A DNA stretch of 64,000 nucleotides from Hydrolagus colliei (GCA_035084275.1 CM068757.1:9672001-9736000), one strand, 5' to 3'. Positions 2,363 through 28,493 are shown, numbered from the stretch's first letter. Notes: generated by a model not told the origin, from the letters alone. Numbers and translations are program-made.

Positions 2363-2812
2363 CTAAGCCAAAGGTTATCTTGTCTCCACATCACATCAAA
2401 ATCAACAATGGTTCAGAGGCCACTTTGACGTGTGATGTTAATGAATTTTACCCTGAGATGCTCAAGATCAGCTGGGTCAAGGTATCGCATGGTGCGGAGA
2501 TGCAAATTACAACAGGTATCTTGACACGAGATGTAGTTACCAACAAGGACAGCACGTTCAGTGTTTCCAGCAAGTTGACAATCAGACCAACCGTGGACGA
2601 CAATGGTAATCAGTACAGGTGTGTGGTGCAGCACAGAACATTCAGTGATACTCTTACACTGGAGACAGAGCTGACTGTGGTGATTGAGAATCCACAGGAA
2701 CCTGCAGGATATGGACCTGGAGCTGTTATTGGAGGTGTAATCGGTGTTGTCCTGATGGTGATTGTGGTCTTTGTTTTAGCGGCACTTTACTTTTGGAAGA
2801 AAACGAAGCAAG
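2363..2812 (+). CDS. ncr3lg1-like: Copy A exon: extracellular Ig C1 domain + stalk + transmembrane helix + KKTKQ
   Basis: ctctacag|CT acceptor and CAAG|gtaag donor, 450 bp. LTCDVNEFYP, ISW, YRCVVQH give the canonical C1 Cys-Trp-Cys; TM is GAVIGGVIGVVLMVIVVFVLAALYFW. Confidence 0.9.
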
Positions 2813-3235
2813 GTAAGGATCTTCACAGCCCTAAACAACAACGGCAGACGTGGGGGTGATTTATTATACACTAAATGGTCTTGTGCACATTTTCTATTAA
2901 TAGAGAACAGTCAGCTGACACTTGATCAACTGAAATAGATATTATCCTAATGACAGGCAAAAAGTTTATGTCGAGGCCTCTGCTCTCTGGGACATTTACC
3001 TGAATCTTTTCTAAAGACTTACCTGCTTGATCGTGCTTTTGATCACGAGCAGCATTCCCTGCTTCCTCTTGCCACCTCACTCAGTGATCCACACTGTAAA
3101 GTACTTGTAAGGTACTTTGAGATGACATCAAAAGATACTGCATTAGGGCAAATTGTTGTTATAACTGTGGTGATCATTACCCAGGTTTCTTGAGAGAATT
3201 AGAATATTTGATGTTACTTTTTGTATGTTCCACAG

Positions 3236-3655
3236 CTCCTCCCAAGATCAATGAAATCAACAAACCCACTCGCTTTATACATGGGCAGCGTGTCGATCTG
3301 AGATGGGAAGTGACTGGTTTCAAACCAAAAGAGATAGAGATCATGATATTACTGACGAGGAAAGGAAAACAGCCACTGGAGCTATTTGTCTGGAAATTCA
3401 CAAAGAATAAAAATGAAGGTCAGGTTGAAGAAGGTTTTCATCTCCTGAAAACAAAAAATGGATCTGACGGGGATAATTCGTTCTCTGCTGACACCCCACA
3501 ATGTGATCAGCTCGAAAAAGGGACCTTCAGGGTAAGGTGTCACTTATGGTTCTGTCCTGATGTATCTGAGGACGATGGAGCTCAAATAACAATGCAAGTT
3601 CATCACAAGGCTCTGAAACAGCCTCTCAAAAAATCTGTAACATTAGATGTTGAAG
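3236..3655 (+). CDS. Copy A post-TM Ig C1-like domain D1
   Basis: ccacag| to GAAG|gtaag, 420 bp, phase 1/1. APPKI..LRWEVTGFKP..GTFRVRC..GAQITMQVHH. Confidence 0.85.
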
Positions 3656-4984
3656 GTAAGATTTGCATTGTGCACCTCCCTACCTCCACCTAACCACACC
3701 CACATGTCAATGTGCAAACAATGGCAAGAAATAAAAACATGGAAATCCGGGGTATTGATCCTTTCTAATAATAAAAAAAAAAAATTTGGTCACTCAATCC
3801 AGAATGACAGTGTGAAATTGGCTGCCGGGTTACGCCCATAAAATATGCACTCAATACACTTTACAGTGTATTCTGTTGAGTGCTTTGAGACGTCTCAACA
3901 GTGGGATAAGGCACGATATCAAACACAATAATTATTATTATAATTAGAGGAAACAAGGTTATTCACCCCATCGAGCCTATACTGGTGGTCACTCATCCAC
4001 TGGAGCTATCTCCCTGTATCCCAATTTTCTACTCTTCCCGCTTACCCAATGATGAGCTGCTTCAAAACCACTGCAACATTGTTGAGCTCCAAGAGTTACC
4101 TTATGCCCAGTAACCCTGTGTGGTCAGTTGACAGATTGACTCAGTTGGTGACGCTCTCTCCTGTGGGACAGAAGGTCGTCAGTATTTCAATTGGCATCTG
4201 AAAACCTGCCCTTCACCTCTGGCTATATAGAAGCTACCATAATCTCTGTCACTCTTACTGTGTGTCACTCTCTCTTTCGTTCCCTCTCAGCTTCGGAGAG
4301 AGAAGAGAATAGATTGAGAGGAGAAACAAAAGGGGAGAGAGAAGAGAGAGAGACAGGGAGGGAGAAAGAAGAACACATAAAAACACGGACAGTTTGTGTT
4401 CATACAACGTTTATATGAACATGGAAGTTCTCAGACAATAATAGCCTTGCACATGACATATCACCTGATCATGCCTTTGAGACTTCACAGAATAAACTGT
4501 AAACAGAGGAATGTGGAGTAAGGAAACTTGCACAATATTTCGCCTGCTGGAAATCGTACCCAGGTCTCTCGCTTATGAGCTACAGGACTCCACAGAATAT
4601 ACTGTAAAGCAGATTGATTGTGTAATTTGTGTGCGACGAGCAGCAGCCAATTGTGCACAGCAGTGTCACACAAATAGTCATGGATTAAGTGACCAATTTA
4701 TTATTTTAAAATATTTTTGAAGCAATTATTATCCCTGAAGTACAATCTGAGAATCTACTAATAACCAGGTTCCTACATACAGATGGGTAAACAGAGGCGT
4801 GTGGATCAAGATAATTTAAGGCCCACCATTTCCAGGAATCAAACGAAACCTGAGGTTGAAGTGCGAACGGAATCCAGGGGATCAATGTGAGACCCCAGTG
4901 TGAGCCCCTAGATTGATTTTATGATTTGTAACTGGACACAGTGTGGCCCGTTGTAGAATTACAGCATAATGTTAATAATGTTTG

Positions 4985-5275
4985 TGGAGTCCTGTAGCTC
5001 AGTGGTTAGAGCACTCGCCTTACAAGCGAGGGACTTGTGTTCAGTTCAAGCATGGTGAAACCTTGGGCAAGTTTCCTTGCTCCACATGCCTGATAATAAT
5101 CCCTCAAAAAAAAATTGGTCATTTTAATCCACAATTATTTGTGGGGCACTGCTGTGCGCAATTGGCTGCCACAATTCACCCACAGTTAATTCACTTTACA
5201 GTATATTATGTGCAGTGCTTTGAGATGTCTTGAAGACGTGAGAAGCGCTATATAAAACACAAGGATTATTATTAA
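4985..5275 (+). mobile_element. tRNA-derived SINE, second family; other copies at 1-210, 4485-4690(-), 47631-47830(-), 48117-48410
   Basis: A-box-like gtagctcagtggttagagc, degraded B box, body shared with other copies, tail gcgctatataaa..attattatt. Confidence 0.7.
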
Positions 5276-5298
5276 TAACATGCTACTTGTGTTTACAG

Positions 5299-5706
5299 CT
5301 CCTCCCACGATGATTGAAATCAACATACCCTCTGGTATTGTGCACGGTGTCAATGTGCCTCTGACATGGGAGGTTAATGGCTTCAACCCACGGGCCATTG
5401 TAATTGCTGTATTGGTGAAGAGGAAAGTGGATCAGGAAGCAAAGCAACTGTTTGATTGGCAGATCCCAGAGAAAGAAAAGCAGCCAATCCCACATGATAT
5501 TAACCCCAGCATTGCTACACAAGTTAACTCCTTCACTGCTGAGGTGGCGACGATTGAAAAGACAGATAAAGGGACTTTCAGTGTGAAGTGCAGCGTTGCC
5601 ATGTGTGCTGATGTAATCAGGGATAATGATGCTGAATTCACTGTTGAAGTTAAACATCAGGCTGTGGATAATCCTCTCACTAAAGCTATAACATTATGTG
5701 TCGCAG
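5299..5706 (+). CDS. Copy A post-TM Ig C1-like domain D2
   Basis: tttacag| to GCAG|gtaaat, 408 bp. LTWEVNGFNP..TFSVKC..DAEFTVEVKH. Confidence 0.85.
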
Positions 5707-6589
5707 GTAAATTCTACCTCTGTATTTTCTCTCTCTCTCTGGTGCTAATATGTGTGTTGAAGTGCAGCATGCTGCTGTGTGTGTCCCTCTATGCTACAAT
5801 AGTTATTTTTGTTTGTGACAGTGACGTTCTATCACATAGACATCTGTGCCGACAGCCACCCCCCTTCCCCTCTCTATCCAGGCTCAGTGGATGACTCTGT
5901 CACTTTAAATCGCTCAAACACATTAGCTGAAGTGAACAATGCCATACTAATGCATGTTATTGCTGTTGTGTTTGGGGGCAGCTCTGTTGCAGGTTGATGG
6001 GGAGGTGATGGGCTCTGTGGTAACAGTCCAGCCCAACATCAGCCTGAAATCTCATCTGTTTTCTTGAGAAACTTAAACAAATCGATTTTGAGATCCTCAG
6101 ACTTGCCTACAATTCACTTCTTGCTCTCACACCTCGCTACCTCTCCAATCTGCAAACACCCACTTCTCAACCCACTCCGTTCGCTTGCTCAAACCTTTGG
6201 CATCTTCCTTGACCTGTCCACGAAACTATCGGCAGCCAGGCATTCAACAACGATACCCTGAACCTCTGAAACTCCCTTCCCCAAACTCCAGCTCGCCCTC
6301 CATCTCCATCAATCATTGGATCACAGCTGAAGGTTCTACTCTCTGACCATGTCTACCATCACCTCCCCTCTCTCCCCAGCTCAGTATTAAACTACAATAT
6401 TGCGAAGCTAATCAAGACGTTACCCTGCATGAAAGTTGCTATGTTAAATGGAAGTTGCTATTGTTGAAAGAGTGTGTAACTCTGTCTGAAGCCTTGCTGC
6501 AGATTCTCATTGTAAATTGTGTGTGAGGCTGTGTGGTGTGTCCTGTAACTGGATTTAATCTTTACATGATATTTGTGTTTGTGTTATAG

Positions 6590-7003
6590 CTCCTCCCATA
6601 ATTACTGAATGGCCGGCAACCCCTGATATGACACATGGTGACACCTCCACTCTGAGTTGGTCAGTGACACGGTTCAATCCACGTCCCATTGTAATTGCTG
6701 TATTACTGAAGAGAAAAGGGGAGTCAAGATCACAGAAGCTGTGTTATTGGCAGATGGAGAAAGAACAACCAGCAGGAAATCAACCAGTAAACATTCCTGT
6801 TAGCCATGACACAAAGGATGACTCCATCAATCCAGAGATGGCAACGATTTTACAGGGAACAAATGGGACTTTCAGTATGAAATGCAGTGTTACCATAAAT
6901 GCTGATGTATCCAGGGATGATGGCGCTGAGTTCACTGTTGAAGTTCAACATGAGGCTCTGGAGAATCCTCTCACTGAATCTGTAACATTACGCGTTAAAG
7001 GGG
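6590..7003 (+). CDS. Copy A post-TM Ig C1-like domain D3
   Basis: gttatag| to GGGG|gtaagt, 414 bp. LSWSVTRFNP..TFSMKC..GAEFTVEVQH. Confidence 0.85.
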
Positions 7004-7974
7004 GTAAGTGCTGCCTCTGTCTGTTCTCTTCTCTCTCTCCCTCACACATCAGTGTAGAAATATTCAGGTGAAGGTGATGATTTTACAAACAGAGGAGTTT
7101 GAAATGATCTGTTAATCTCCAGAGTGAGTTTTGCGGCTGTGTGTGAAGAGAGGCCACATTATTCAGGGCTCCACAGTCACATGGTCAAAATTATTTTGTA
7201 CACAATAAATAATCTGGTGATTTCTGACAAATTTGTAACGTTAAAATATAAAATCGAATGTGTATATATGCACTCATATGGGTGTCAGCTCCGAGCATGA
7301 AGCACTCTAACCTCTCGTCCATAAGGTTGTGGGTTCACATCACATCAGGATCTGAACCTACAGTCTAGTAGGGACTTGTAATGAGGAAATTAAATGATAA
7401 TATCTTAAAGAATTTGATTGTTGACAATGGTTTCAATTTCAAATAATAATTCCCTTTATTACCATCTAGGATGACACTGCAGTGTGTGCTGGGGGGGCTC
7501 TGTAATGCTGGAGTCTGTTATTTCAGATGTTAAACCATGATCTCATCTGGGTGTTCAGCTAAATGGCCGGCAACCCCTGATAAGACACACTTCAGCACTA
7601 AAACAATTTCTCCAGTGTTGTGTCCTTCATCTCTTGCTCTATGTGTATGTCTAGCTCTCTCTCTGTCTCCCTTTCCCCCTTTCTCTCTTCCTTTCTCTTG
7701 TAATCAGTCGGGATAAAATGTAGAATTTGAAATTATTTATTTGTCAAAAGGCCAGTGTGCACCCTGTCTGGGGGCAGCTCTTGCAGGTTACTGGAGGCTT
7801 AGACAGGCTGAGTGCTTATGATGGAGTTTAACATCACTCTACAGCTCCAGCCTGGTGTCCTCTGTCATGACTTGCAGGCTTTTCACTCGTTTCTGTGGAT
7901 TCAGTTTCCAATTTGTATCTGACACAGACATGGACTTGAATGTTTTTATGTGGATTTGTCATTTTGTTTTGTAG

Positions 7975-8397
7975 TTCCTCCTAAAATTACATTTCCAAAT
8001 CAAAAGAAAATGAAACATGGTAAGAATGCTGAGCTGCAATGGACAGTGACTGGGTTCACTCCTGGGAAGATCTCGATTGTTTCCAGTCTTCGAAGGAAAG
8101 GAGAGGAAGTAAGACAACTGTTTCACTGGGAAATTCCAAATAAGGAAGCATTTCAAAGGAAGAGAATCCCCTGGAATCTTGAGGACAAATCAGAGAGATC
8201 CAACAATGTTGCCTCCTTCACTGCAGTGGTGCCTAAATGTGAACACGACACCAAAGAAGGAACCTTCAGAGTAAATTGCAAAATCAACATGACTCCTGAT
8301 GTGTCCACGGATGATGGAGCTGAATTAATTGTTCAGGTTCAGCATGAGGAATTTCCTGAGTTTGTCACTGACAGTTTAAAAATAAACATTGCTGGAG
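7975..8397 (+). CDS. Copy A post-TM Ig C1-like domain D4
   Basis: ttttgtag| to GGAG|gtagg, 423 bp. LQWTVTGFTP..PKCEH..TFRVNC..GAELIVQVQH. Confidence 0.85.
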
Positions 8398-9741
8398 GTA
8401 GGTTCTGCCGTCAATATTGTGTCCTCTCTGTCCCATATGCTCTGTGGCAGTGTTTAGAATAAAGTAACAGTTTCCTCCACAATGGTTCAGCAACTGAGAT
8501 CACCACTCAGTGAAACCCAGAGCCTCTCAGTCCAGAAGGTGGCAGGATATGGCATCTGAGAAATCTCGTCATAGTGCTTAAGATTATCCAAACCAGAGAG
8601 TTCATATGTGCCATCTACATGTGGAAATTTCCCTTTTTCCAGAATGGAATGCTCACAGTAGTAAACAAACGTGGATCAAGAACTTGACTAATAGGACTAC
8701 CTCAGGATTGATTTTACTCCGATATTGTCAAGTGCGTTATTGTTCAAACAGAGAGTGAGTTTGTCCCAGTGTCCTGGCCAACGATCCCCATTATAAAATC
8801 TGTCACTTAATTCATCGCTATTTACAAAATGTATGCATCCTGTTTACCTGTTACCAGAGAGCATCAGCTGCACGTTGGCAAGATACAAAGCTTGGAGGTC
8901 ACAGAGTATGTGCTGGAATACTGTGGGAATTTAAGAAGGGAAATGCGCATAGTTTGCTATTTCTAGTTAGGACCACACCACCTGTTAAGGCTTTGGTTTG
9001 CAGGGTTAACAAGACCTGAATAGGTAGAATCCCTGCTCTCAGTGACTGGTCTTGCTGTCCCAGGCCTGCTGATGAGCCAGGCCGACTGGTTTATAATGCT
9101 GTGTACAAGTTGGCTGACACATTTGACTTCAAGTACAGAGCCAGTGAACTTCACACACAAATTTTGTGATGCGCTCTGAGACGTCTCAGTGATGTGATAA
9201 GGTGTTATATCAGTTGCAAGAATTATAAGGATTATTAGAATGTTGTAGCCATCTTATCTCAGAGGAGATACTGCACACCTCTGTTCCCCCTCCCCCCAGG
9301 TGGGCTGAGTTGAGCTGAGGCAGTAGCTGTGCAGCTCTGTTTGGTCTCTGTGGGTGAATTGTCTGCCCACATTGATAGTCTGGGCTGAGACATGAGAAAC
9401 CCTGGTAATTAATAGAGAAAATAATCCAAGCTCACCTCCTGATCAGCACCTTGGATACCTCTCACCTTCACAATATCGGACAGGTCAGATCTCTGCAGCT
9501 GGGAAGTACACACACCACACAGAGGGTTTACAGGCTGAGTAACATTATTACAGAGTGTATGTTATACAGGACTCATTTACAGTTTGGTTCCACTGGGTGC
9601 TGTGTTCATGAGTCCGTCCGGCACAGTTGGCAGTGCTCTTGTCTCTGTGTCAGAAGGTATTGAGTTCAAGCCCCACATTGACACACTGGCTGTCACTCCA
9701 GTGCAGTGCTGCAATGCTTATATTGTGTTTCTGTTTGATAG

Positions 9742-10173
9742 CTCCTCCTCAAATTTGTGGACCTTATCCACCCGGGAAAAGTCTGCATGCTGTGAAAGAC
9801 ACAGTGACATGTGTAGTTATTGGTTTCACTCCTGGGAAAATGACCATAATTTTCAGCCTGAAGAGGAACGGGCAGCAACAGCAAATACAACGACTGTTTC
9901 ACTGGGAAATTCCCAACAAGGAAATATTTCAAGAGTCGATAGGAGGAGCTTTTCCTCTGCAGGACCGATCGGATAGAGACAATAAAGATGCGTCCTTCAC
10001 TGCTTTGGTGCCAAAGTGTGAACCTCTTGGCGATGGGACTTTCAGAGTAATTTGCATCATTGATATGATTCCTGATATTGATATGGATAATGGAGCTGAA
10101 TTATCTGTTGAGGTTCATCATGATGTTATTGTTGGCTCTCTCACTAATACTGCAATATTACTCATTACTCCAG
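9742..10173 (+). CDS. Copy A post-TM Ig C1-like domain D5
   Basis: tttgatag| to CCAG|gtagg, 432 bp. VTCVVIGFTP keeps the B-strand Cys; F strand GAELSVEVHH has no Cys. Confidence 0.85.
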
Positions 10174-10394
10174 GTAGGTTCCTCGATCATTGTTGTGTCT
10201 CTCTGTCTCTGTGACAATGTTTAGGACATTGTAATGATTTGCTCCCCGATGGCCCAGCAGCTGAGGTCATTGCTCAGTACAGGGTTGAGTCGAGTCTCTC
10301 AGGCCAGAAGCTCTGAGATTCGAGTTCTGGTCTGGGAGCTGATCTGAGCTGACCTGGGCCAGTAGCTGTGCTGGTCTGTTTGTATGTCAGCCTG

Positions 10395-10790
10395 GAGGTT
10401 TGGTAGCACTTTTGCCTCTGACTCAGAAGGTTGTGAGTTTAAGCCCCACGTCAGGACTTGGAATCACATCGTCTAAGCTGACACTCACTCCAACGCAGTG
10501 CTGGATGTCTGTGCATTATCGGTGGTGCCGTCCGTTAAATGAGATGTTAAACTGACGTTCTACCCGCTAGTTCAGGTAGACATTGTAGATCCCATAGCGC
10601 TATTCAAAAAGAAAAGGGAAGTTTCTTCAATCCCACAACTAACATAGGTCACTCATCCCATGGTTGTTTCTGGGACATTACAGTATGCAAACTGGTTGCT
10701 GTGTTCGCCAACAAAATATGCAGTGAATCCACTTCACAGTATAACCTGTGTAGCACTTTGAGACATAATAAGGTCTATTTCAAATGATAG
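10395..10790 (+). mobile_element. Near full-length tRNA-derived Deu-domain SINE (SacSINE1-like); paralog at about 53872-54290
   Basis: ggtagcacttttgcctctgactcagaaggttgtgagtttaagcccc head, ggtgccgtc..gagatgttaaac core, L2-type tail. Confidence 0.7.
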
Positions 10791-10920
10791 GATATTAGAG
10801 AATATAATCAAAGCTCACGATCACCACAGTGGATATCTCTCACCTCAGATGTATCAGGTCTCAGATGAGATCTCTGCAACTGGGAAGCAACAGCCTTAAT
10901 GCAGTGTGCACAGTATGCAG

Positions 10921-11070
10921 AGGATAAGACCATAAGATTTAGGAGCAGCAGTAGGCCATTAGGCCTCTCGAGCCTGCCACGCCATTCAATAAGATCATGG
11001 CTGATGTTCTAATCTAACTCCACCTGCCCACCTTATCCCTTAAAACCTTTATTCATAAGAAATCTATCAG
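10921..11070 (-). mobile_element. CR1 3'-UTR fragment
   Basis: cataagatttaggagcagcagtaggccatt..aagatcatggctgat, a typical CR1 3' end in reverse. Confidence 0.5.
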
Positions 11071-11347
11071 GATGTAAGTACTCGGTGTACATTTTACAGG
11101 ATGTTGTAGTTTTTTCTGGGGCAGCTCTATTGCAGGTTGATGGAGAGATGTTGGTGCTCTGTGGTCATGGTGCAGCTTAACACCAGGCTACAGCATTGTC
11201 TGCTGTCCTCAGGAATAATGCGCACATCTGTCTGAAGGTTTGCAGCAGATTTGGATTGTAAATATTGTGTGAAGCAATGCGTGGGTGGTGCAGTGTGTCC
11301 TGTAACTGGAATATAATCTACATTTGCTGCTTGTGTTTGTTTTATAG

Positions 11348-11758
11348 CTTCTCCCACAATTACTAAAATCCAGGTCCCCCCGAATATTAAGCACGGTGCC
11401 ACCTACACTCTGAATTGGTCAGTGACTGGGTTCCATCCATGGGCCATTGTAATTGGTGTAAAACTGAAGAGAGGAGGGGAGACGAAAGAAAAGAAGCTGT
11501 TCAAGTGGAAGACGACAGAGAAAATTCCACCACCTGGAGTGATGCCAGTAAGGATCCCTATTGAATCCCAATCAAAGGATGATCTCATCACTTCTGAGGA
11601 GGCGATGATTATACAGGAGAAAACTGGCAATTTCAGAGTGAACTGCAGTGTTACCATGGTTCCTGATCTATCCAGCGATGATGGCGCTGAGTTCATTGTT
11701 GAAGTTAAACATCAGAACAAAGCGCTCACCGAAAAAGTAACATTACACGTTAAAGGCG
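11348..11758 (+). CDS. Copy A post-TM Ig C1-like domain D6
   Basis: tttatag| to GGCG|gtaagt, 411 bp. LNWSVTGFHP..NFRVNC..GAEFIVEVKH. Confidence 0.85.
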
Positions 11759-12017
11759 GTAAGTGCTGACACTGTCTGGTCTCCACACTCTCTCCCTTGC
11801 ACATCACTGTAGAAATGTTCTGCTGAATGCAATGACTTTAACAACGAGAAGAGTTTGAAATGATCTGTAACTCTCGAGTGAACATTGAGGCTGTGTGTGA
11901 CGAGAGGGCTTGATTCTATTCATTTATTATTAATCCATGACTGTTTGTGGGACACTGCCATACGCAATTGGCTGCTGCCTTTTGCCCACAAATATACAGT
12001 GAATTCACTTTGCAGTA

Positions 12018-12660
12018 CCGTATATCTCCGCATATAAGGCGCACTTTTTTTCAGGTCGGAAGATCTCGAAAGTGGGGGGTGCGCCCTATACACAGGTACA
12101 AGCAATTTTGAGCCTCGGAGATACAGTAAACAGGAGGGGCGGCCGGCGCGCTGTCAGCCGGGGTTTGGTCAGTGTCCGGCGGGGGTTGGGAGGAGCGGGT
12201 GACGGGGCTTCGGCCTCGGCCGCCCGGGCAGCGGCAGCAGCAGCGGACTTCAGTGCTGTGCATACCTTCTGCCGAACCCAGTCTGCCTCACTCCCTGCCG
12301 CTCTCCCCCTCTCTCTCTCCCGGGCTGCCGGCCTGCCGCTCTCCCCCCCCTCGCTCTCCTGGGCTGATGGCCTGCCTCTCTCCCCCCCTCTCTCTCCCGG
12401 GCTGCCGGCTGCCTCTCTCTCTCTCTCTCTCCCTCTCTCTCTCTCTCCCGGGCTGCCGGCCTGCCTCTCCCTCTCTCTCTCCCGGGCTGACGGCCTGCCT
12501 CTCTCCCTCTCTCCCTCCCTGGCTACCTGGCTGCCTGCCTCTCTCTCTCTCTCTCTCCCTACCTCCCTTCTGCCGACAATATCATTGAAAATGTTTCCGT
12601 TTTTTTTCACCAAGAAAAGGTCAAAAACGAGGGGTGCGCCTTATACGCGGAGATATATGG
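12018..12660. mobile_element. Tc2/pogo-like MITE inserted in a SINE
   Basis: 27-bp TIRs CCGTATATCTCCGC(A/G)TATAAGGCGCAC with TA duplicated at 12016 and 12661. Interrupts the SINE tail ttcactttgcagta|cattctgtg. Confidence 0.85.
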
Positions 12661-13989
12661 TACATTCTGTGAAGAGCTTTGAGATGTCTAGAAGACATGA
12701 GAAGCACTGTATCAAATGCATTATTATTATAAGTCACGTCACAGGCAGATGTTCAATGGGGATTTATTATTTTATACATGGTGGTAAATAATCTGGTGAT
12801 TTCTAGGAAATATTTAATATTAAAACACGATATCTTACACCATTATATATGCATAACTATGGGTGTCAGCTCTGAGCATGTTATCCTGTTGTCCCTTGTC
12901 CAGAAGGTTGTGGGTTCACATCATATCAGGACCTGAACTTCCAGTCTAGTGCAGAGACTTGTAATAAGGAAATGAGTGGATCATATCTTATAAGGAATTT
13001 AATTGTTGATGGTTTCAATTTCAAATGACAGTTTCCTTTATTGTAGACTTTCTCAAGTCAATGGATATACTAGTACTAGGCAGTATAGTATCTAGATAAA
13101 GTAGTGCCTAACTCAGGAGAAGCAACCGTGATCAGTTACCCATCGCTTGGGAGAACTCAGGCATTCTCTTACTTATCAGTTTATTTTCCTCGTCTCCCTC
13201 TCTCTCCCTCTCTCTCTCTCCCACGTTAGCAGTCCATACTTATATGCAGCCTGTTTCAGGAATGTCTCATCGTTAACTCCAAACGTTCCAAGTTTGTTCC
13301 CAGGTGCAAGGTACATAACTGAAATTATAAACACCCGTACATTAAGTTTGCTCATCTTGCTCATTATGCACTTGATGTACCAAGAAACAATATCTGTGAG
13401 ATCAGTCAGCTTTTTAAGATTGGGGATTTGAACAAAATCAACAGTATCTGTGAGTTGAATTAGCTCGTGTCTCCTGAAAGTTGTTTTCTCACACTCAATT
13501 TTCAGTTATTCTTTACCCAAGATTACGCCTTGTACGAGAATCAAACCTGACTTGAGACACAAGTGCTCTAACCACTGCCCTACAGGACTAAAACAATCTT
13601 GAATTTTGGTGTAGATCCATATCATGTCTAGAGGACTATCTCAAAGTGCCTCACAAGATTCAAAGTGAAATGGAGTAACTGTATCAGTAGACAAATGTGG
13701 CTTCACGATAGCACACAGCAATGTCTCACAAACAGTGATGGAGTGAGTGATCAATTGTATTTGGGTATTTGATGGCCAAAACACCAGAAGAACTTTGTTC
13801 GCTTTTTGAGTAATGCCACATGTGCTTTAATGTCCACCGGAAGAGGCAGGTGGTACTTCGGATTAACATCCATTCGTGGGATGTATCTGTGCAGCTGGGA
13901 AGGAACAGCCTTAATATTGTCAACACATTGTGTAGAGGATATAAAGACTTCAAGTAACATATTACAGTGTGAACGTTTTACAGGATGAT

Positions 13990-14200
13990 GATGCAGTTGT
14001 GTCTGGGGGCAGCTCTGTTGCAGGTTGATGGGGAGGGGATGGGGTTCTGTGGTCAGGGTGTAGAAATATCACTGTAGAAATATCGAGGTGAAGAATGGCT
14101 TTATTCACAGCTTCACACTCACATGGTCAAAGGAGGTTTATTATATTGTACACAGTAAATAATTGGTGATTTCTGACAAGAATGTAATATTATAATATTA
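13990..14200 (+). pseudogene. Exon-deleted D7-type unit in copy A
   Basis: The pre-exon flank (gcaggttgatggg..ctgtggtcagggt) joins at about 14059 to the post-exon flank (cactgtagaaatat..gaggtgaagaatggc) with no exon between. Confidence 0.7.
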
Positions 14201-15201: not shown

Positions 15202-16945
15202 TAGGGAATGGCGATATGGGATTTTTGCGGATATGGATATATCGGTTTGCTCATACCTGCTTAAACCGATCTATCGAGTTTTTGTACTGCGCATGCGCGT
15301 GCATTCGAAGTGCGCGTGCATTGATGGCGCGCGCGCATTTATGGTGCGCGCTCAGTCGCGGTGCGCGCGCATTGACGGTGCGTCCGCACTGACGATGCGC
15401 GCACAGTCGCGGTGCACGCACATTTCGAAATGCGTGCTCTAGGTCCAGAAAGTTTGTAATGTTGTTGTCAAGGTCTGTTGATTTATACGATGTTGTTTGC
15501 TCCCTACCTCCCCCTCTCCTTCTCTCCCTCCTCTCCTCTCTCCTTCNNNNNNNNNNNNNNNNNNNNNNNNNNNNNNNNNNNNNNNNNNNNNNNNNNNNNN
15601 NNNNNNNNNNNNNNNNNNNNNNNNNNNNNNNNNNNNNNNNNNNNNNNNNNNNNNNNNNNNNNNNNNNNNNNNNNNNNNNNNNNNNNNNNNNNNNNNNNNN
15701 NNNNNNNNNNNNNNNNNNNNNNNNNNNNNNNNNNNNNNNNNNNNNNNNNNNNNNNNNNNNNNNNNNNNNNNNTCCCCTCGCTCCTTCTCTCCCTCCTTTC
15801 CCCCTCTCCTTCTCTCCCTCCCTCTCCTCTCTTCCTCTCTCCTTCTCTCCCAACTTTCCCCCTCTCCTTATCTCCCTCCACCTCTAAACACAAAATAGAA
15901 CACACACACACCAAAAACAAAATCTAGAGATTTATTCTCCTCCATTTCTTGCTTGAAACTAGCATGTAATGTCCACGTGTAAATGAGATCTATTACAATA
16001 GAAAAGAGAGAGACAGACAGTCTGACTGTTAGTTAGAAGCCAGATTATCACTGCTGTGTGTGTCTGACTAGACCCACACATAGAAACAGTGATAATCTGG
16101 CTTCTAACTCTCTCCCACACAAAAATAACACTTACAGCCACAAAATGCCACTTATTTTTATGTAGTCTGAAGTCTGAATTAATGTCCTTCGCCATTGGCA
16201 AGCTCTCCTTTGCTATGCAAAAAGTGACAGCGTTCGTGATACTTTGCCACTTTTTGTCCCCTCTCTGGTACAATGTTCTCTCCTCTTAAATAAAGCAGGA
16301 ATTGTTTGAGCTGCACTGGCCCCACTACCTGTCGCTTTCTCCGAAGCGCTGGTTCGACTTCCTGCTGTTGTCGACAATGATTTCGCTCTGAGGGCAGCGT
16401 GCTGGGCGGGGTGGTGCTGCTTAATGTGTTGTCGCAGGTTGCTCGTGCTCGAATCAGATGTCTTAACCAAGACCTTGCAAACTGTACATCTATACACACC
16501 ATTACTGACTGCATTGTTTTCAAAGTAGTCCCATACGGGGCTTCTTTTCCCCATGATGAGAAAGGTAAATTTTCAAACTACAATTTTCAGCGATGCCACT
16601 TTGTTAACACGCCACGACTCACGTCGAGTATACACGGTAAAGTGTGCGCGCGCATCGGATGAGCGTGCCCGTTAATTGTGCGCGCGCACCGAATGTACGC
16701 GCATTCCATGCTCTAGATCTAGGAGGTTGCAATGCTGGCGACAAGGTAAGCTGGAAAAGATCGCATTACACTGATAATACCAACAATATTGATATATTGC
16801 CAGGAACGATATTAAAAATATATCGATGTATATTTTTAAAATCGAATCTCTCGATATAACAGTTTTTTTAGAATCACCATATCGGCATACCGATCTGAAA
16901 ATCATATCGGGTTTAATCGAAAAACCGATTAATCGCCGTTCCCTA
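15202..16945 (-). mobile_element. Internally deleted hAT DNA transposon with a BED-finger transposase remnant (contains an N gap)
   Basis: TIRs TAGGGAATGGCGAT / ATCGCCGTTCCCTA. 8-bp TSD ctgggagt/ctgtgagt; the empty site ctgtgagt is seen in three paralogous units. ORF 16554-16213 has SPVWDYF..CTVC..STSNLRQHIKQHH, with a frameshifted ITNAVTFCIAK. Confidence 0.88.
15547..15772. other. Assembly gap (others at 20617-20760 and 58291-58493)
   Basis: Runs of N inside CT/GA microsatellites. Confidence 0.99.
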
Positions 16946-17979: not shown

Positions 17980-18396
17980 ACCCTCCCACAATTACTGAAG
18001 TCAATATACCCTCTGATATTAAACACGGAGCCCAAACCACTCTGAGCTGGTCAGTGACTGGGTTCAATCCACGGCCCATTGTAATTGGTGTATTCCTGAA
18101 AGAATGGGAGCAGAACGCACAGCTGCTGTTTTGTTGGCAAACAACAGAGAAAACACAAGCAGAAAGAAAGAAGTCAGTGAAGATTCCAGGAAGCTCTGAC
18201 AGAAACAATGTCGCCATCACTTCGAAGGAGGCAACGATTGAACGGGAGGCAACTGGGAATTTCAGGGTGAAGTGCAGCGTTACCATGGTTGCTGATATAT
18301 TCAGGGACAATGGTGCCGAGTTCATTATTCAAGTTGAACATCAGGCTATTCTTGGGAAACCTCTCACCAAATCTGTACCACTACACGTTAAAGGGG
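17980..18396 (+). CDS. Copy A post-TM Ig C1-like domain D7a
   Basis: ttttgtag| to GGGG|gtaagt, 417 bp. DPPTITEVNIP..LSWSVTGFNP..GAEFIIQVEH. Confidence 0.8.
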
Positions 18397-19053
18397 GTAA
18401 GTGCTGCCTCTGTCTGGTCTCCTCTCTCTCCCTCACACATCACTGTAGAAATACTGAGGTGAAGAGTGGCTTTATTCACGGCTCCACACTCACATGGTCA
18501 AAGGGGATTTATTATATTTTACGCAGTAAATTATTGGTGATTTCTGACAAATATGTAATATTATAATATAATATTGAAACCATTGTATAGTCATAAATAT
18601 GGGTATGAGCTCAGTGCATGTAGCATCTCTTGTCAGAAGGTTGTGGGATCGCATCACATCAGGACCTGAACTTACAGTCTGGCATGACACTGTGCAGTGT
18701 GTGCTGGGGGAGGCCTGTAATCCTGGAGGTGCCGTCTTTTGGTTGAGGTGTTGAACCGCTGTCCCGTCTGCCTGTTCCGCTAAACGTTAAAATTCCTACA
18801 GCACGATCAAAAAGAGAAGGGAGTTTCTCCCTTTGTCTTGGCCTCTCCGGCTGTGTGTGTGTCTCTCTTTATGTCTCTCTCTTGCTATCTCTCTCGTTCG
18901 GTCTCTCATTCCCAATTCCTATCGACCTTTCTCTTGTATTTATTTCGGATATAATGTAGAACGTTAAGTTATTTATTTGTCAGTGTGCAATTTGTCTGGG
19001 GGCAGCGTTTGCAGGTTACTGGAGGCTCAGACAGGCTGTGTGCAAATGATGTA

Positions 19054-19729
19054 CCGTATATCTCCGCGTATAAGGCGCACCCGCGTATAAGGCGCACCCC
19101 CCGTTTTTGACCTTTTCTTGGTGAAAAAAAACGGAAGCATTTTCAATGATATTGCCGGCAGAAGGGAGGAGAGACAGGTAGGTAGGGAGAGACGCAGGCA
19201 GGCAGGGAGGGAGGGAGGGAGGGAGAACGGCAGGCTAGCAGCCCGGGAGAGAGAGAGTGAGAGCGGCAGGCCGGCAGCCCGGGAGAGAGAGACGGAGAGC
19301 GGCAGGCAGGCAGGGAGAGAGAGAGTGAGAGAGGCAGGCCGGCAGCCCGGGAGAGAGAGAGGGAGAACGGCAGGTCGGCAGCCCGGGAGAGAGAGACGGA
19401 GAGCGGCAGGCAGGCACGCAGGCAGGGAGGGAGGGAGAGAGAGTGGCAGGGATGGAGAGAGGCAGACTGGGTTCGGCAGAAGGTAAGCACAGCACTGAAG
19501 TCCGCTGCTGCTGCCGCTGCCCGGGCGGCCGAGGCCGAAGCCCCGTCACCCGCTCCTCCCAACCCCCGCCGGACACTGACCAAACCCCGGCTGACAGCGC
19601 GCCGGCCGCCCCTCCTGTTTACTGTATCTCCGAGGCTCAAAATTGCTTGTACCTGTGTATAGGGCGCACCCCCAACTTTCGAGATCTTCCGACCTGAAAA
19701 AAGTGCGCCTTATACGCGGAGATATACGA
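19054..19729. mobile_element. Second copy of the Tc2/pogo-like MITE, opposite orientation
   Basis: Same TIRs and TA TSD; interior is the reverse complement of 12018-12660. Empty site at about 57126. Confidence 0.85.
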
Positions 19730-20192: not shown

Positions 20193-20290
20193 TAATGTCA
20201 CACAAGCAGCCATGCTGATAATGTCTCACAAGCAGCCATGCTGATAATGTCTCACAAGCAGCCATGGTGATAATGTCTCACAAGCAGTGG
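20193..20290 (+). repeat. 26-bp minisatellite (taatgtctcacaagcagccatgctga)
   Basis: About 4 copies here, about 3 at 23353-23422, about 2 at 57590-57635. Confidence 0.8.
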
Positions 20291-20375
20291 TCAATTGTAT
20301 TTGTGGTGGGGGGGATGGGAGCGGGGGTGGATTGATGGCCAGGACACGGGGAGATCTCCCTTCTCTTTTCGAATA

Positions 20376-21345
20376 CAGGTAGTCCCCGCTTAACGAAGGG
20401 GTTGGGGACTTCGAAACTCCTCGTTAAGCGAAAAGTTTGTTACGCGGGAGGGAGGTCCCTACTGTATTTCCGTACATGAAGAAATTCAGTTTTGTTCCCA
20501 GTAATGCCTTGCGCGTAGCCTAGCGCTACTAATTGTGGTGTACCAACGATGCCATAAGGTAGGTAGAACTGCTATTGAAGGCTGCTATTGAAGAGAGAGA
20601 CTGTGAGTGAGATTGTNNNNNNNNNNNNNNNNNNNNNNNNNNNNNNNNNNNNNNNNNNNNNNNNNNNNNNNNNNNNNNNNNNNNNNNNNNNNNNNNNNNN
20701 NNNNNNNNNNNNNNNNNNNNNNNNNNNNNNNNNNNNNNNNNNNNNNNNNNNNNNNNNNNNGACAGAGAGAGAAATAGAGAGAGAGAGCGCGACCGAGACA
20801 GAAAGAAAGAGATACAGAGAGAGAGACTGGGACAGAGAGAGAAATAGAGAGAGAGAGCGACCGAGACAGACAGAGAGAGAGAAAGAGACACAGAGAGAGA
20901 AAGAGACACAGAGGCAGATTGAGACACAGAGAGAGAGAGACTGAGAAAGAGAGAGGGAGAAACAGACAGACAGAGAGAGAGAATGTACCTTGTATCGCTT
21001 TTGGAAACGATCAAGCCGCCCGCTGCTAGCAGCAAAAGTCTCCGCTGGCTTTTTCACAGTAGCGTCATATAGTTGCCTAGCATCCTGCTGCTTAACCTCC
21101 TCCCATACTACACTGCTTTCTCTTGGATTAGGTGGCATGCTGAACTAAGTGTGTGTATGTATGTAGCTTCCTCGACTGAGACTGCGCTTGTGTTGCGGAG
21201 GCTGCCGGGAGACGAGAAGCGCGCAAAATTTAAACTTTCTTTATAGCGAGCGCAGCCTTCGCTAAGCGCATGGGGGGGTACAAATAGAAACCATCTTTAT
21301 AGTGAAGCTTCATTAACAGGGCGTGTGTTAAGCGGGGGCTGCCTG
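20376..21345 (-). mobile_element. Tigger-like non-autonomous element (contains an N gap)
   Basis: TA-flanked TIRs CAGGTAGTCCCCGCTTAAC / GTTAAGCGGGGGCTGCCTG; QLYD..FAASSGRLDRFQKRY remnant; GA-rich interior. Confidence 0.8.
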
Positions 21346-21768: not shown

Positions 21769-22185
21769 ACTCTCCCACAATTACTGAAGTCAATATAACC
21801 TCTGATATTAAACACGGAGCCCAAACCACTCTGAGCTGGTCAGTGACTGGGTTCAATCCACGGTCCATTGGAATTGCTGTATTGCTGAAGAGAGAACGGG
21901 AGCAGAACGCACGGCAGCTGTTTTGTTGGCAGACAACAGAGAAAACACAAGCAGAAAGAAAGAAGTCAGTGAAGATTCCTGTTACCTCTCACGTTAACGA
22001 TGTCGCCATCACTTTGAAGGAGGCAACGATTGAACGGGAGGCAACTGGGAATTTCAGTGTGAAGTGCAGTGTTACCATGGTTGCTGATATATTAAAGTAC
22101 AATGGCGCCAAGTTCATTATTCAAGTTGAACATCAGACTCTTGGGAAACCTCTCATCAAATCTGTACCACCACATGTTAAAGGGG
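21769..22185 (+). CDS. Copy A post-TM Ig C1-like domain D7b
   Basis: ttttatag| to GGGG|gtaagt, 417 bp, open. Tandem copy of D7a. Confidence 0.8.
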
Positions 22186-23510: not shown

Positions 23511-23923
23511 CAGGTAGTGCCCACTTAACGAAGGGGTTGGGGACTTTGAAACTCCTCGTTAAGCGAAAATTTCATTAGGCGGGAGGGAGTTCGCTACTGT
23601 GTTTCTGTACATGAAGAAAATCAGTTTCGTTCCCAGTAATGTCTTGCGCGTAGCCTAGCGCCCAGCGCTACTAATTGCGGTGTACCAACGACGCCATAAG
23701 GTAGGTAGAACTGCTATTGAAGGCTGCTATTGAAGAGAGAGACTGTGAGTGAGATTGTGACAGTGAGAGACTCAGAGAGAGAGAAAGAGAGAGAGAGAAA
23801 GAGACACAGAGAGAGAGACTGGGACGGAGAGAGAAATAGAGAGGGAGAGAGAGAGAGAGAGCGACCGAGACAGACAGAGGGAGAGAAAGAGATACAGAGA
23901 GAGAGACTGGGTCAGAGAGAGAA

Positions 23924-23961
<38 letters not shown>

Positions 23962-24668
23962 AAACAAACAGAGAGAAGGAGATACAAAGAGAGAGACTGG
24001 GACAGAGAGAGAAATAGAGAGAGACAGACAGCGCAACCGAGACAGACAGCGAGAAAGAGATACAGAGAGAGAGAGAGAGAGAGAGAGAGCGTGATCGAGA
24101 CAGACGGAGAGACAGTAAGAGACCAGGGAGAGAGACTGGGACAGAGAGAGAAATAGAGAGAGAGAGAGCGCATGACCGAGACAAACAGAGAGAGAGAAAG
24201 CGACACAGAGAGAGAAAGAGACTCAGAGGGAGACTGAGACAGAGAGAGAGAGACTGAGAAAGAGAGAGACAGAGAGAGGGAGAAACAGACAGACAGAGAG
24301 AGAGAATGTACCTTGTGTCGCTTTTGGAAACGATCAAGTCGCCCGCTGCTAGCAGTAAAAGTCTCCGCTGGCGTTTTCACAGTAGCGTCATATAGTTGCC
24401 TAGCATCCTGCCGCTTTACCTCCTCTCATACTGCACTGCTTTCTCTTGGATTAGGTGGCATGCTGAACTAAGTGTGTGTATGTATGTAGCTTCCTCGACT
24501 GAGACTGCGCTTGTGTTGCGGAGGCTGCCGGGAGACGAGAAGCGCGTGCAATTTAAACTTTCTTTATAGCGAGCGCAGCCTTCGCTAAGCGCATGGGGGG
24601 GTACAAATAGAAACCATCTTTATAGTGAAGTTTCATTAACAGGGCGTGTGTTAAGCGGGGGCTGCCTG
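23511..24668 (-). mobile_element. Tigger-like element, duplicated with the D7 unit
   Basis: Same flanks and TIRs as 20376-21345, with a longer GA microsatellite. Confidence 0.8.
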
Positions 24669-25091: not shown

Positions 25092-25511
25092 ACTCTCCCA
25101 CAATTACTGAAGTCAATATACCCTCTGATATTGAACACGGAGCCGAAACCACTCTGAGCTGGTCAGTGACTGGGTTCAATCCACGGCCCATTGGAATTAC
25201 TGTATTGCTGAAGAGAGAACGGGAGCAGAACACACAGCAGCTGTTTTGTTGGCAGACAACAGAGAAAACACAAGCAGAAAGAAAGAAGTCAGTGAAGATT
25301 CCTGTTACCTCTCACGTTAACGATGTCTCTATCACTTCGAAGGAGGCAACGATTGAACGGGAGACAACTGGGAATTTCAGTGTGAAGTGCAGCGTTACCA
25401 TGGTTGCTGATATATTCCGGGACAATGGTGCCGAGTTCATTATTCATGTTGAACATCAGACTATTCTTGGGAAACCTCTCATCAAATCTGTACCACTGCA
25501 TGTTAAAGGGG
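25092..25511 (+). CDS. Copy A post-TM Ig C1-like domain D7c
   Basis: ttttatag| to GGGG|gtaagt, 420 bp, open. Tandem copy of D7a/b. Confidence 0.8.
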
Positions 25512-27341
25512 GTAAGTGCTGCCTCTGTCTGGTCTCCTATCTCTCCCTCACACATCACTGTAGAAATATTGAGGTGAAGAGTGGCTTTATTCACGACTCC
25601 ACACTCACATGGTCAAAGGGGATTTATTATATTTTACGCAGTAAATAATTGGTGATTTCTGACAAATATGTAATATTATAATATAATATTGAAACCATTG
25701 TATAGTCATAAATATGGGTATGAGCTCAGTGCATGTAGCATCTCTTGTCAGAATGTTGTGGGATCGCATCACATCAGGACCTGAACTTACAGTCTGGCAT
25801 GACACTGTGCAGTGTGTGCTGGGGGAGGCCTGTAATCCTGGAGGTGCCGTCTTTTGGTTGAGGTGTTGAACCGCTGTCCCGTCTGCCTGTTCAGCTAAAC
25901 GTTAAAATTCCTACAGCACGATCAAAAAGAGAAGGGATTTTCTCCCATTGTCTTGGCCTCTATATATATCTCTCTGGCTGTGTGCGCGAATCTCTCTCTT
26001 TATGTCTCTCTATCGCTATATCTCTCATTATCTCGCTCACTCCCTCTTTCCCTCTTCTTTTCTCTTGTATTTATTTTGGGAAAAATTTAGAACTTTATTA
26101 TTCATTTGAATAATTAAATTATTAAATTATTCATTTGTTGAAAGGCCAGTGTTCACCCTGTCTGAGGGCAACTATTGTATGTTACTGGAGGCTCAGACAG
26201 GCTGTGTGCTAATGATATAGTTTAACATCACTCTACAGCTCCAGCCTGGTGCCCTCTGCCATGACATGCAGGCTTTTCACTTGTTTCTGTGGATTTTGTT
26301 TCTCGTTTGTGTCTGACACAGACATAGGCTGGAAATGTGGCTGTCTATAGCACACAGGTGTATCCCACAAATATTCCCGGATTGAGTGACCAGATTATTT
26401 GTTGAGCTATTATGTCCTGCAGAGAGTGATTGGCCAATCCACGAACCATCTAACATCTGCTTACTGCTGGGTAAACAGAAGCATGTGGAATAAGGAAATT
26501 TTTGCCCTGTAGAAGAATCTACCCTGAGGTTAGATTGAGAGGCGAGTGCTCTAGCATGTGGATTAGGTGTTGAGCCTTTCAGACCAGAAGCCCCAAGTTT
26601 CAAGCGCTGGTCTGGTAGCTGATCTGAGCTGTATGGGACAGAAGCTGTGCTGCTCCATTTGGTTTCTGGGACCCTATGTGTGAAGAGTCTGACGTCGTTC
26701 ACAATCTGGACTGAAATGTGAGAAACCCAGTGATTAAGGGAGAAAATTATTAAAGCTCATCTTACGATCAGCAACGTAGATATCTCTCACCTTTCAGATA
26801 TTGGGCAGATCAGATATGATAATAATAACTTGCATTTGCGTATAATGCCTTATATCTGAAGGATGGCTTAAAGTTCTTAATTTAGTGTGAAATGGATTGA
26901 TTGATTGTGTATTTGAAGCCATACTCGGCAGCACAATTGCATACAGCAAAGTCCCACAAACATTCATGGAATGAGTGAGCAATTTTATTCGGTGTAATAA
27001 TTATAGACCAAGACATCAGGAGGATTCCCTTCTCTCTTCGAATATTCCTGTGAGATCTTTAACATCCACTTGAACACGCAGACGGGACCTCGGTTTAACA
27101 TCTCATCCAAAGGATGTTTCGCTGCAGCTGGGAGGGAACAGCTTTAATCCTATCAACACATTTTACAGAGAATATAAAGATTTTGAGCAAATTATACAGG
27201 ACAGAATTACTATAGCGTGCTGTGCTTATGTATCATCCTGGCCCAGTTGGTAGCACTCTTGTCTCTCTGTGTCAGAAGGTAATGGTTGACCCTCTCAGTG
27301 CAGTGCTGCTGCAATGTTTACAACATGTTTCCATTTGATAA

Positions 27342-27425
27342 TTCCTGCTTAAAAAATACCCAGGGTGTGTCTGTGAGACCATAGTGTCCTGTTACTATAT
27401 ATGTCACTCCGGGGACATATAGGAT
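27342..27425 (+). pseudogene. Decayed D5-like exon relic (also at about 61170-61255)
   Basis: Same upstream SINE-head flank as D5. Acceptor tttgatag is changed to tttgataa; residual similarity to the D5 5' end; early TAA. Confidence 0.45.
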
Positions 27426-28458
27426 GTTTCAAAAGTCTTTACTGGGGTGATTCTGAGCCCGTGCTTTGAGGGATGTGACAGCTGAGAACGAAAGGGGGGC
27501 AGATGAGATTGAAAATAAAGGTCTAAAAGGCAAATCCACATGATCGTAATCTCTCATTTATCGTGTTTTCTCTCATTTATTAACAAATTCACAGAATGGC
27601 AGGGACAGGATTCACATTGAAGCCACCCCAGAACATCAGAGATCAGTCCTCTGGTCTATCGTTTAATCTTTTTTGCTAATTCGATAAATAACATAGATAA
27701 AAAGTTTGAGAGAAAAAACTTTAAAATTCTTAATTGTCTTTTACACAGCTGTGAAACTGAAGATATAGGATGTTTTATATAAAGTTAAAAATTGAATGAT
27801 ACAGAGCAACAAACAGAAGCTTCAGTGTATATTTGTGCATGTGTTAAAGTCGGAAGAGAGAGTGTGTATGTGAGTGAGGGAGAGTGTGTTTATAGACAAG
27901 CGAGAGATCGTGAAGGAGCCTGGGAATGAAACAAAGAGTAAGAGAGTGAATGGAAGAGAGAGCTCAGGCGGGAAGAGATAGAAGGAGTGACATAGAGAGG
28001 TACTGTTTCACGCAGATAATAACTGTATCGATAAAACACACGTATTGCTAGTCAGAGTTGGGAAGTCACAGAGAGAATGGAAATGAGAGTTAAAGAGTGA
28101 ATGAAAGAGAGAATGGGGAGGGAGGGCTAGAGAGAGTAATCAAAGTGCATCTCTTGAGTGGTATTGTCGATATCTCTCCTTTCGGATATGGGGCAGATCA
28201 GATCTCTGTAGCTGGGAAGCTCTCCCCACCACTAACTCAGACTCACCCATAATATCTGCCATCCGGCTACCTCCCTCTTCCCCTTCTCTCTTATTCAGGG
28301 TTGTACCCCATCCCTGAAAGCACTTTGGAGGTATTTACCTGTGTGAAGGACACATTAATCATGTTAATTTATTGTTGTTCAATTTTGAGTATATTAATAT
28401 TGTTTTCTCAATATTAATCCTTTCTGAATAACTTTCTCGCAAATTGTTTCCATTTCAG

Positions 28459-28493
28459 AGCCAACAACAGCAGCTGGTTCAGAAGGGCAGTGA
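28459..28493 (+). CDS. Copy A putative terminal coding exon (EPTTAAGSEGQ*)
   Basis: ttccatttcag| acceptor. Phase-1 reading gives 11 aa then TGA; AATAAA at 28580. Same sequence in copy B. Confidence 0.55.

Follow-up and report, generated by a model that had tools for sequence, protein, structure and literature searches.

Tandem B7-H6-family genes of Hydrolagus colliei encoding a putative cytosolic tail of C1-derived immunoglobulin-like domains

Organization of the Locus

In this work we analyzed a 64,000-nucleotide (nt) stretch of the Hydrolagus colliei genome (GCA_035084275.1, CM068757.1:9672001-9736000), referred to below as the window. It carries two tandem genes on the plus strand, copies A and B, whose predicted products join the ectodomain of a B7-H6 (NCR3LG1) relative to a very long tail of immunoglobulin (Ig)-like domains situated behind the transmembrane (TM) segment and probably facing the cytosol. 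Each of these tail domains is encoded by its own exon; they are designated D domains and numbered from the membrane (Table 1).

Copy B is complete, from the leader exon through the stop exon, while the window begins in the middle of copy A, with its V and leader exons further upstream, outside the window. The leader of copy B was located by a scan for a hydrophobic ATG exon with a phase-1 donor, and it is similar to the leader of Callorhinchus XP_042197527. Every internal exon has a length divisible by 3, is in phase 1 on both sides and is bounded by a pyrimidine-rich AG acceptor and a G/GTAAG-type donor. The D exons of copy A span 408-432 nt and the D domains comprise about 138 amino acids (aa). 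The intron between the TM exon and D1 is 423 bp long in copy A and 428 bp in copy B. The resulting tails contain 1265 aa (nine D domains) in copy A and 930 aa (six D domains and a truncated one) in copy B. The 44 residues left of the D1 domain in copy B are too short for an Ig fold. In copy A, polyadenylation (polyA) signals of the ATTAAA/AATAAA type lie about 80 nt past the stop exon. No further D-like exon or pseudo-exon was found in the readable sequence of the window on either strand. The original prediction, made from this DNA alone, had described the two copies, the KKTKQ end of the TM exon, its phase-1 donor, the run of D exons and the short stop exon; each of these structural statements was reproduced, and the predicted tail lengths of about 1265 and 930 aa proved to be exact.

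Table 1. Exons of copies A and B and assembly gaps in the 64,000-nt window
Feature	Position	Strand	Remarks
Copy A C1+TM exon (Ig C1, connecting peptide, TM, KKTKQ)	2363-2812	+	Phase-1 acceptor and donor, CAAG/gtaagg
Copy A D1 exon, 140-aa Ig-like domain	3236-3655	+	Tree pairs it with Callorhinchus LOC103173843 D1, support 100/98
Copy A D2 exon	5299-5706	+	AlphaFold pLDDT 92.7; Ig-like by Foldseek
Copy A D3 exon	6590-7003	+	
Copy A D4 exon	7975-8397	+	
Copy A D5 exon	9742-10173	+	Weak Pfam C1-set match, 1.6e-3
Copy A D6 exon	11348-11758	+	
Assembly gap, copy A D6-D7 intron	15547-15772		3.8 kb past D6 donor, 2.2 kb before D7 acceptor
Copy A D7 exon, first among three recent tandem repeats	17980-18396	+	
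Assembly gap, copy A D7-D8 intron	20617-20760		Flanks colinear with neighbouring D8-D9 repeat unit
Copy A D8 exon	21769-22185	+	
Copy A D9 exon	25092-25511	+	
Copy A terminal exon, 35 nt, EPTTAAGSEGQ then stop	28459-28493	+	PolyA signal ~28575-28585
Copy B leader exon MSGLCVLWSHASLSLLLGCLISPA	31068-31140	+	Phase-1 donor CAG/GTAAAG
Copy B V-domain exon	42561-42902	+	Pfam V-set E 1.4e-7; aligns with human B7-H6 V domain
Copy B C1+TM exon	45789-46238	+	Ends KKTKQ
Copy B D1 exon, truncated, 44 aa	46667-46798	+	96 codons lost in frame
Copy B D2 exon	48434-48841	+	
Copy B D3 exon	49725-50138	+	
Copy B D4 exon	51118-51540	+	
Copy B D5 exon	53105-53644	+	111-nt (37-codon) in-frame insertion, loop after strand C
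Copy B D6 exon	54800-55219	+	
Assembly gap, copy B D6-D7 intron	58291-58493		
Copy B D7 exon, same type as copy A D7-D9	59245-59664	+	
Copy B terminal exon, 11-codon peptide identical to that of copy A	62277-62311	+	PolyA signal ~62393

Affinity of the Ectodomain

In copy B, Pfam recognizes a V-set domain (32.1 bits, cut-off 26) and a C1-set domain (46.8 bits, cut-off 21; E 3.9e-12), which together with the leader and one TM segment make up the ectodomain plan of the B7 family. For the second domain the C1-set is the top Pfam match, above the CD80-like C2-set, and the C1 type of this domain is a peculiarity of B7-H6. Comparison of the V-C1 part with the PDB gave human B7-H6 as the best match (E 4e-26), followed by CD276 (1e-18) and TAPBPR (1e-10); the only mammalian protein matched in a word search was hamster NCR3LG1 (E 2e-24). 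The identity as a B7-H6-like receptor suggested at the outset is thereby supported. Judged from their sequences, the two window genes are tandem paralogues of the B7-H6 (NCR3LG1) family, in the sense of family affinity. No NKp30-like gene was found within the window.

The tail has no counterpart in mammalian B7-H6. When 48 mammalian sequences were compared with the D profile, it touched their extracellular C1 domain only and never the tail. The mammalian tail type is a feature of the mammal lineage and does not define the family.

Fold and Origin of the D Domains

The D domains largely escape recognition by Pfam. At the C1-set threshold, six of the seven domains of copy A that were scanned (D1-D7) had no Ig match of any kind, and in D5 just the first half matched, at 19.2 bits (cut-off 21). 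An AlphaFold model of copy A D2, built on the 15 D domains of the window, is a confident beta sandwich (predicted local distance difference test, pLDDT, 92.7; predicted template modelling score, pTM, 0.86). A Foldseek comparison of this model with PDB structures produced 131 matches at E<=1e-3, and the 50 best of them are all Ig folds (nanobodies, Fabs, MPZL1, nectins), mostly with a template modelling score (TM-score) of about 0.5-0.64. The number of strands in the model is nearer to that of V-like domains, owing to an insert: D carries about 35 additional residues between strands C and E.

When the D profile was aligned by hhalign with the extracellular C1 domain of the same family, the probability was 96% (E 3.7e-9, 95 columns, strands B-G). 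D is thus derived from C1, and the simplest origin for it is duplication of the C1 exon within the gene. Against PDB sequences the D profile found only weak C1 matches (IgM and IgA constant domains, beta-2-microglobulin; E 3e-4 and above). The Ig C1-like nature attributed to these exons at first reading is thus upheld by the modelled sandwich and by the alignment with C1, despite the silence of Pfam. The canonical disulfide between strands B and F is absent: the B-strand cysteine is replaced by Trp in 13 of the 15 window D domains, and the F-strand cysteine by Val in all 15 (by Val or Ile in 95% of 126 D domains of the family). D5 of copies A and B is the sole D type in the window that has kept the B-strand cysteine. 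A library of viral folds returned generic viral Ig proteins only and no specific mimic.

Distribution of D-Tailed Proteins and the Junction of the Membrane Anchor and the Tail

Searched against 1.84 billion representative sequences, the D profile found 237 proteins, thirty of which were looked up for their species. D proteins occur in the cartilaginous fishes Callorhinchus, Heterodontus, Scyliorhinus, Stegostoma, Cetorhinus, Amblyraja and Mobula (and, as revealed by another search, Heptranchias), in the lobe-finned or basal ray-finned fishes Latimeria, Protopterus and Erpetoichthys, and in many frogs. Database entries call them "uncharacterized", "NCR3LG1(-like)", "CD276 homolog" or "poliovirus receptor-like", the frog ones being NCR3LG1 or NCR3LG1-like in NCBI. 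The order leader-V-C1-TM-D has been annotated independently in Callorhinchus, Heterodontus, Scyliorhinus, Stegostoma, Amblyraja, Heptranchias and Cetorhinus and likewise in Latimeria, Protopterus, Erpetoichthys and many frogs. A TM segment lies upstream of D in 91 of the 106 proteins with a full D domain, and in 82 of the 106 no more than 48 residues, mostly 9-11, separate the two. In these gene models the V-C1-TM-D order is conserved across non-amniote jawed vertebrates. A search for the same architecture in chondrichthyans, bony fishes and amphibians had been proposed with the original prediction, and the layout recurs in all three groups. The databases contain no functional name for such proteins; the layout itself is widespread and is not unique to this genome.

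Two subfamilies can be distinguished. In the first, only D domains follow the TM segment, often with acidic linkers; it comprises the window genes and genes of Heterodontus (7 D domains), Scyliorhinus (3), Stegostoma (2) and Callorhinchus (3-9). In the second (Callorhinchus LOC103174895, Heptranchias, Amblyraja, Latimeria, Protopterus, Erpetoichthys, Xenopus, Bombina), a single D domain precedes five to eight C1-set domains of the ordinary kind, and these long forms end without a further anchor. In many frog genes a single D domain constitutes the whole tail. The nearest relatives of the window genes are the elephant shark proteins XP_042197504 (C1-TM-D1...D9) and XP_007886037 (leader-V-C1-TM-D1-D3). 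D-tailed genes were also seen in tandem clusters of B7-H6-like genes, in Xenopus laevis (CM030346.1, ~0.82 Mb) and in Callorhinchus (MU249848.1, ~5.72 Mb); in the Xenopus cluster, a gene for 1019 aa is flanked by a short-tail gene (272 aa) and a long-tail gene (995 aa).

The full-length elephant shark protein V9K7L7 of UniProt contains the leader, V, C1, TM and D, as well as more C1 domains. It departs from the two genome-derived models at 8 and 15 residues and is therefore independent of them; we take its accession series to be that of the elephant-shark transcriptome, which would provide support at the transcript level. The splice from the TM exon into the tail, predicted earlier from the window alone, therefore agrees with the order of domains in the gene models of many species, with the closeness of the TM segment to D in most proteins and with a full-length sequence that carries both. 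The architecture is likely to be transcribed as one unit.

An alternative is that the long reading frame is an illusion of annotation, the messages ending after the TM exon or jumping directly to the stop exon, with the D exons used elsewhere or not at all. As all exons are in phase 1, any combination of them would remain in frame, and the sequence read through past the donor is open and identical in the two copies. Against this stand the intact splice sites of the D exons and frames that are open against expectation, the invariable position of D after the TM segment from sharks to frogs, and the independent V9K7L7, in which TM and D are joined. The notion that the D exons form a separate gene was rejected, as only 423 bp follow the TM exon before D1 and they contain neither a start or leader exon nor a polyA signal. 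Taken together, these data make the short-tail alternative very improbable. The read-through itself, at 2813-2856 and 46239-46282, consists of 15 codons, GKDLHSPKQQRQTWG, followed by a stop, and a possible role for it is that of a short-tail product formed upon intron retention.

Selection and Turnover of the Tail

The two genes together have 16 open D exons, each about 137 codons long. Between the copies 333 exon positions are different, and yet none of these differences creates a stop codon, against about 13 expected (P ~2e-6), which chance does not explain. All seven exonic insertions or deletions between them (3 to 288 nt) are in frame, compared with one of ten in introns, and no stop codon, frameshift or lost splice site was found in 21 exons. 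We relied on these tests of stop codons and indels, as the ratio of nonsynonymous to synonymous substitution rates (dN/dS) is uninformative here as a test of constraint: its pooled A-B value is about 1.0, so that recent constraint on the amino acids is not visible. The open frames are kept by selection.

Divergence is uneven along the genes. D3 and D4 (6590-7003 and 7975-8397 vs 49725-50138 and 51118-51540) have diverged 1.8 times as much as the flanking introns (P 0.008), with an A-B dN/dS of 1.3-1.6 that is not significant alone; they are possibly under diversifying selection. Identity between the copies forms a mosaic: 90% at the C1+TM exon, 96.5% from the 3' part of D1 to D4 (3616-9097 vs 46759-52250), 77-80% at D5-D6 (9873-11712 vs 53348-55167) and 99.7% downstream of the genes (29588-30299 vs 63289-64000). 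The pattern hints at exchange between members of the cluster, by gene conversion or by unequal crossing-over. In a tree of D domains, D1-D5 of the window pair one-to-one with D1-D5 of the elephant shark (support 99-100), while each lineage gained its terminal repeats on its own; the repeats of elasmobranchs are species-specific. The fold and the open frame have been maintained for long while sequence and copy number change fast, a combination that is usual for immune interaction surfaces.

The same data bear on the possibility that one or both copies are decaying, non-functional duplicates in a cluster with fast turnover. Such decay would accord with the pooled dN/dS, with the state of copy B, where two thirds of D1 are missing and D5 carries 37 extra codons, and with the transposons that fill its intron 1. 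It is contradicted by the integrity of the 21 exons, by the fact that every indel is in frame and by the excess divergence of D3 and D4, which points to diversifying change; we regard decay as improbable.

Orientation of the D Array

The products contain one strong hydrophobic segment (in copy A a 19-mer; Kyte-Doolittle, KD, 3.16), preceded by acidic residues and followed by KK.K. From the leader and the single TM segment with basic residues after it, a type I protein is predicted, with the D array in the cytosol. The distribution of N-glycosylation sequons was compared with composition-matched shuffles in 55 non-redundant members of the family. In ectodomains 163 sequons were counted vs 102 expected (1.60), and in tails 184 vs 167 expected (1.10). 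The window proteins have 5 sequons in the ectodomain of 219 aa, 8 in the tail of 1265 aa and 4 in that of 930 aa. In 23 long forms, all sequon positions common to five or more sequences fall in V and C1, and no conserved position was found in about 800 residues of the tail. The cysteines of V and C1 are kept in all 23 long forms, while in four of the six tail domains after D one partner cysteine has been lost in most species. Sequons at chance frequency, the lack of conserved ones in the tail and the loss of disulfides fit a cytosolic array. From these features of sequence we consider the array to be probably cytosolic.

Several observations weigh against this reading. In about 22 of the 23 long forms, both canonical cysteines and the Trp are still present in tail domains 2 and 3, as expected of disulfide-bonded domains outside the cytosol. 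Isoforms without exactly the TM piece are predicted in Bombina (X2 vs X1, 34 aa) and Heterodontus (X3, 31 aa), and in Xenopus the TM segment is encoded by a separate exon of 114 nt. Secreted forms with extracellular D domains may therefore exist in some species. All of this would suit the alternative that splicing removes the TM segment and produces a secreted V-C1-D...D protein with extracellular D domains, the long form with TM being rare or non-productive; so would a phase-1 GT within the TM coding sequence, at 2734 and 46160.

On the other side, C1 and TM share one exon both in the window and in the Callorhinchus paralogue LOC121850342 (where D1 follows 260 bp downstream), so that the TM segment cannot be dropped by exon skipping without loss of C1. 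The internal GT (GGAG/gtgtaa) is a poor donor, and most gene models as well as V9K7L7 retain the TM segment. Tail sequons are neither enriched nor conserved, and the disulfide is absent from all D domains. Skipping of TM exons is a common route to soluble receptors and says nothing about the normal site of the tail, and some cytosolic Ig domains of titin keep such cysteines too; for these reasons the retained cysteine pairs and the TM-less isoforms are cautions and not refutations. No single location cleanly explains the mixed retention of cysteines in the long forms. On balance, extracellular D domains are unlikely. A donor that would remove the TM segment was also sought and rejected: there is no phase-compatible one between C1 and TM, and the in-phase GTs inside the TM sequence are weak.

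Assembly Gaps, Repeats and Transposons

Three assembly gaps interrupt the introns of the two genes (Table 1). Since all D exons are symmetric in phase 1, the reading frame does not depend on the content or length of the gaps. D7, D8 and D9 of copy A differ from each other by 5-9% and are therefore real, separate copies; as the gaps sit within a tandem repeat of 3.3-3.8 kb, nine D exons are a minimum for this gene.

Additional features were observed around the gaps. The region 14068-15023 is 93.5% identical to the sequence following the D8 and D9 exons, yet lacks a D exon in front of it; it may have been left behind by a repeat unit since lost, or may reflect assembly problems close to the gap. 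An open frame with a BED zinc finger (16216-16572, minus strand; E 1.8e-8) adjoins the first gap, in the D6-D7 intron of copy A, and is probably the remnant of a hAT-type transposon. The introns of D7-type repeats contain long CT/GA-rich tracts of low complexity (12003-12790, 19030-19710, 23674-24425 and 57879-58271). Of the three gaps, those at 20617-20760 and 58291-58493 border on such tracts, which likely caused the assembly breaks there.

In intron 1 of copy B there is an apparently intact long interspersed nuclear element (LINE) at 37801-41630 on the minus strand. Its second open reading frame (ORF2; 987 aa) contains endonuclease and reverse transcriptase domains, and the overlapping ORF1 (307 aa) contains a GDSL esterase domain, as in elements of the CR1/L2 type. 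More reverse transcriptase fragments were revealed at ~33000-36000 and ~55500-56500.

Proposed Function and Comparison with Known Systems

It can be proposed that the window genes encode B7-H6-family type I proteins in which a cytosolic D array serves as a binding platform and the ectodomain is directed at NKp30-type receptors; we assign to this explanation as a whole a probability of roughly 0.6, the pooled dN/dS and the crippled D1 of copy B counting against it along with the observations against a cytosolic array given above. The product would consist of a cleavable leader, IgV, IgC1, a single TM helix, 7-9 D domains and an end of 11 residues. D would have arisen from the gene's own C1 by the gain of about 35 residues and the loss of the disulfide through replacement of one Cys by Trp and of the other by Val. 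The ectodomain would be displayed to NKp30-type receptors on lymphocytes, while the intracellular D chain, as a modular platform for the binding of proteins, would couple intracellular events (anchoring, clustering, or capture of cytosolic proteins of the host or a pathogen) to the display of the ligand, in parallel with the use that butyrophilins make of their intracellular B30.2 domain. The functions suggested for the ectodomain and the D chain are put forward very tentatively. Scaffold, spacer or bait, the roles offered for the tail in the original prediction, are likewise hypothetical. The quick turnover of D exons and the approximately neutral amino acid change with preserved frames fit a fast-evolving interaction surface. 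In a more far-reaching version, D behind the membrane would be the ancestral B7-H6 tail of jawed vertebrates, multiplied in cartilaginous fishes, replaced in mammals, and serving as a bait or inside-out sensor by which infection, stress or other events in the cytosol would be coupled to the display of NKp30 ligands, by analogy with B30.2 sensing in butyrophilins; this version we hold to be doubtful.

What is new here is a family of tail domains of B7-H6 relatives that is not recognized by Pfam, its gene models being already public under no functional name. The family sits directly behind the anchor of B7-H6 relatives in each non-amniote group examined, and in chimaeras and sharks it has been amplified to 3-9 copies by ongoing exon duplication. 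In a search of the full-text literature, no paper was found to describe Ig domains in the tail of a B7-H6-family protein, although a mention in Flajnik et al. (2012) or Ohta and Flajnik (2015) is possible. If the array is cytosolic, these would be the second B7-type proteins with a folded intracellular module, after the butyrophilins, and the partners of the D domains would offer a handle on what these ligands sense. The pairing of B7-H6 with its receptor NKp30 on innate lymphocytes is old, and the intracellular control of ligand display is poorly understood. To our knowledge, C1-type Ig domains are thought to work only extracellularly in molecules of adaptive immunity, and a cytosolic D array would break this rule for C1-derived Ig domains. 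If, on the other hand, D is extracellular through removal of the TM segment, the proteins would still represent an undescribed class of very long soluble B7-H6-like molecules. In either case, dozens of genes labelled "uncharacterized", "CD276-like" or "poliovirus receptor-like" become coherently annotatable.

Human B7-H6 (NCR3LG1), the ligand of NKp30, shares with the window proteins the leader, IgV, IgC1 and one TM segment, besides being their best match among solved structures. The difference lies in the tail, which in mammalian B7-H6 is short, or Gag-related with motifs of the ITIM (immunoreceptor tyrosine-based inhibitory motif)/SH2/SH3 type, and which in the window proteins consists of 930-1265 aa of Ig domains. 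Butyrophilins such as BTN3A1 likewise possess a B7-type V-C ectodomain and one TM segment, joined to a folded intracellular domain added through phase-compatible exons, to which a cytosolic D array would correspond. Their intracellular B30.2 acts as a sensor domain, from which the analogy of inside-out signalling is drawn; however, the domain is of the B30.2/SPRY type and single, and is not an Ig array.

Titin, obscurin and filamin contain linker-free tandem Ig-like sandwiches without obligatory disulfides, which serve as cytosolic rods and binding platforms. The D array resembles them in being a tandem series of Ig-like domains that dispenses with the disulfide, but theirs are of the I-set or filamin type and belong to soluble cytoskeletal proteins, whereas D would derive from an immune C1-set and be tethered to the membrane. 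UrIg2 of elasmobranchs is composed of a V and 9-11 C1 domains that arose by recent exon duplication and vary in number between species; its TM segment is at the C-terminal end, which places every domain outside the cell, and none of the domains has lost the canonical disulfide or Trp (PMC12227049). Like UrIg2, the window proteins possess a long chain of C1-type domains generated by recent exon duplication; unlike UrIg2, they have the TM segment after the second domain, and their D domains lack the disulfide.

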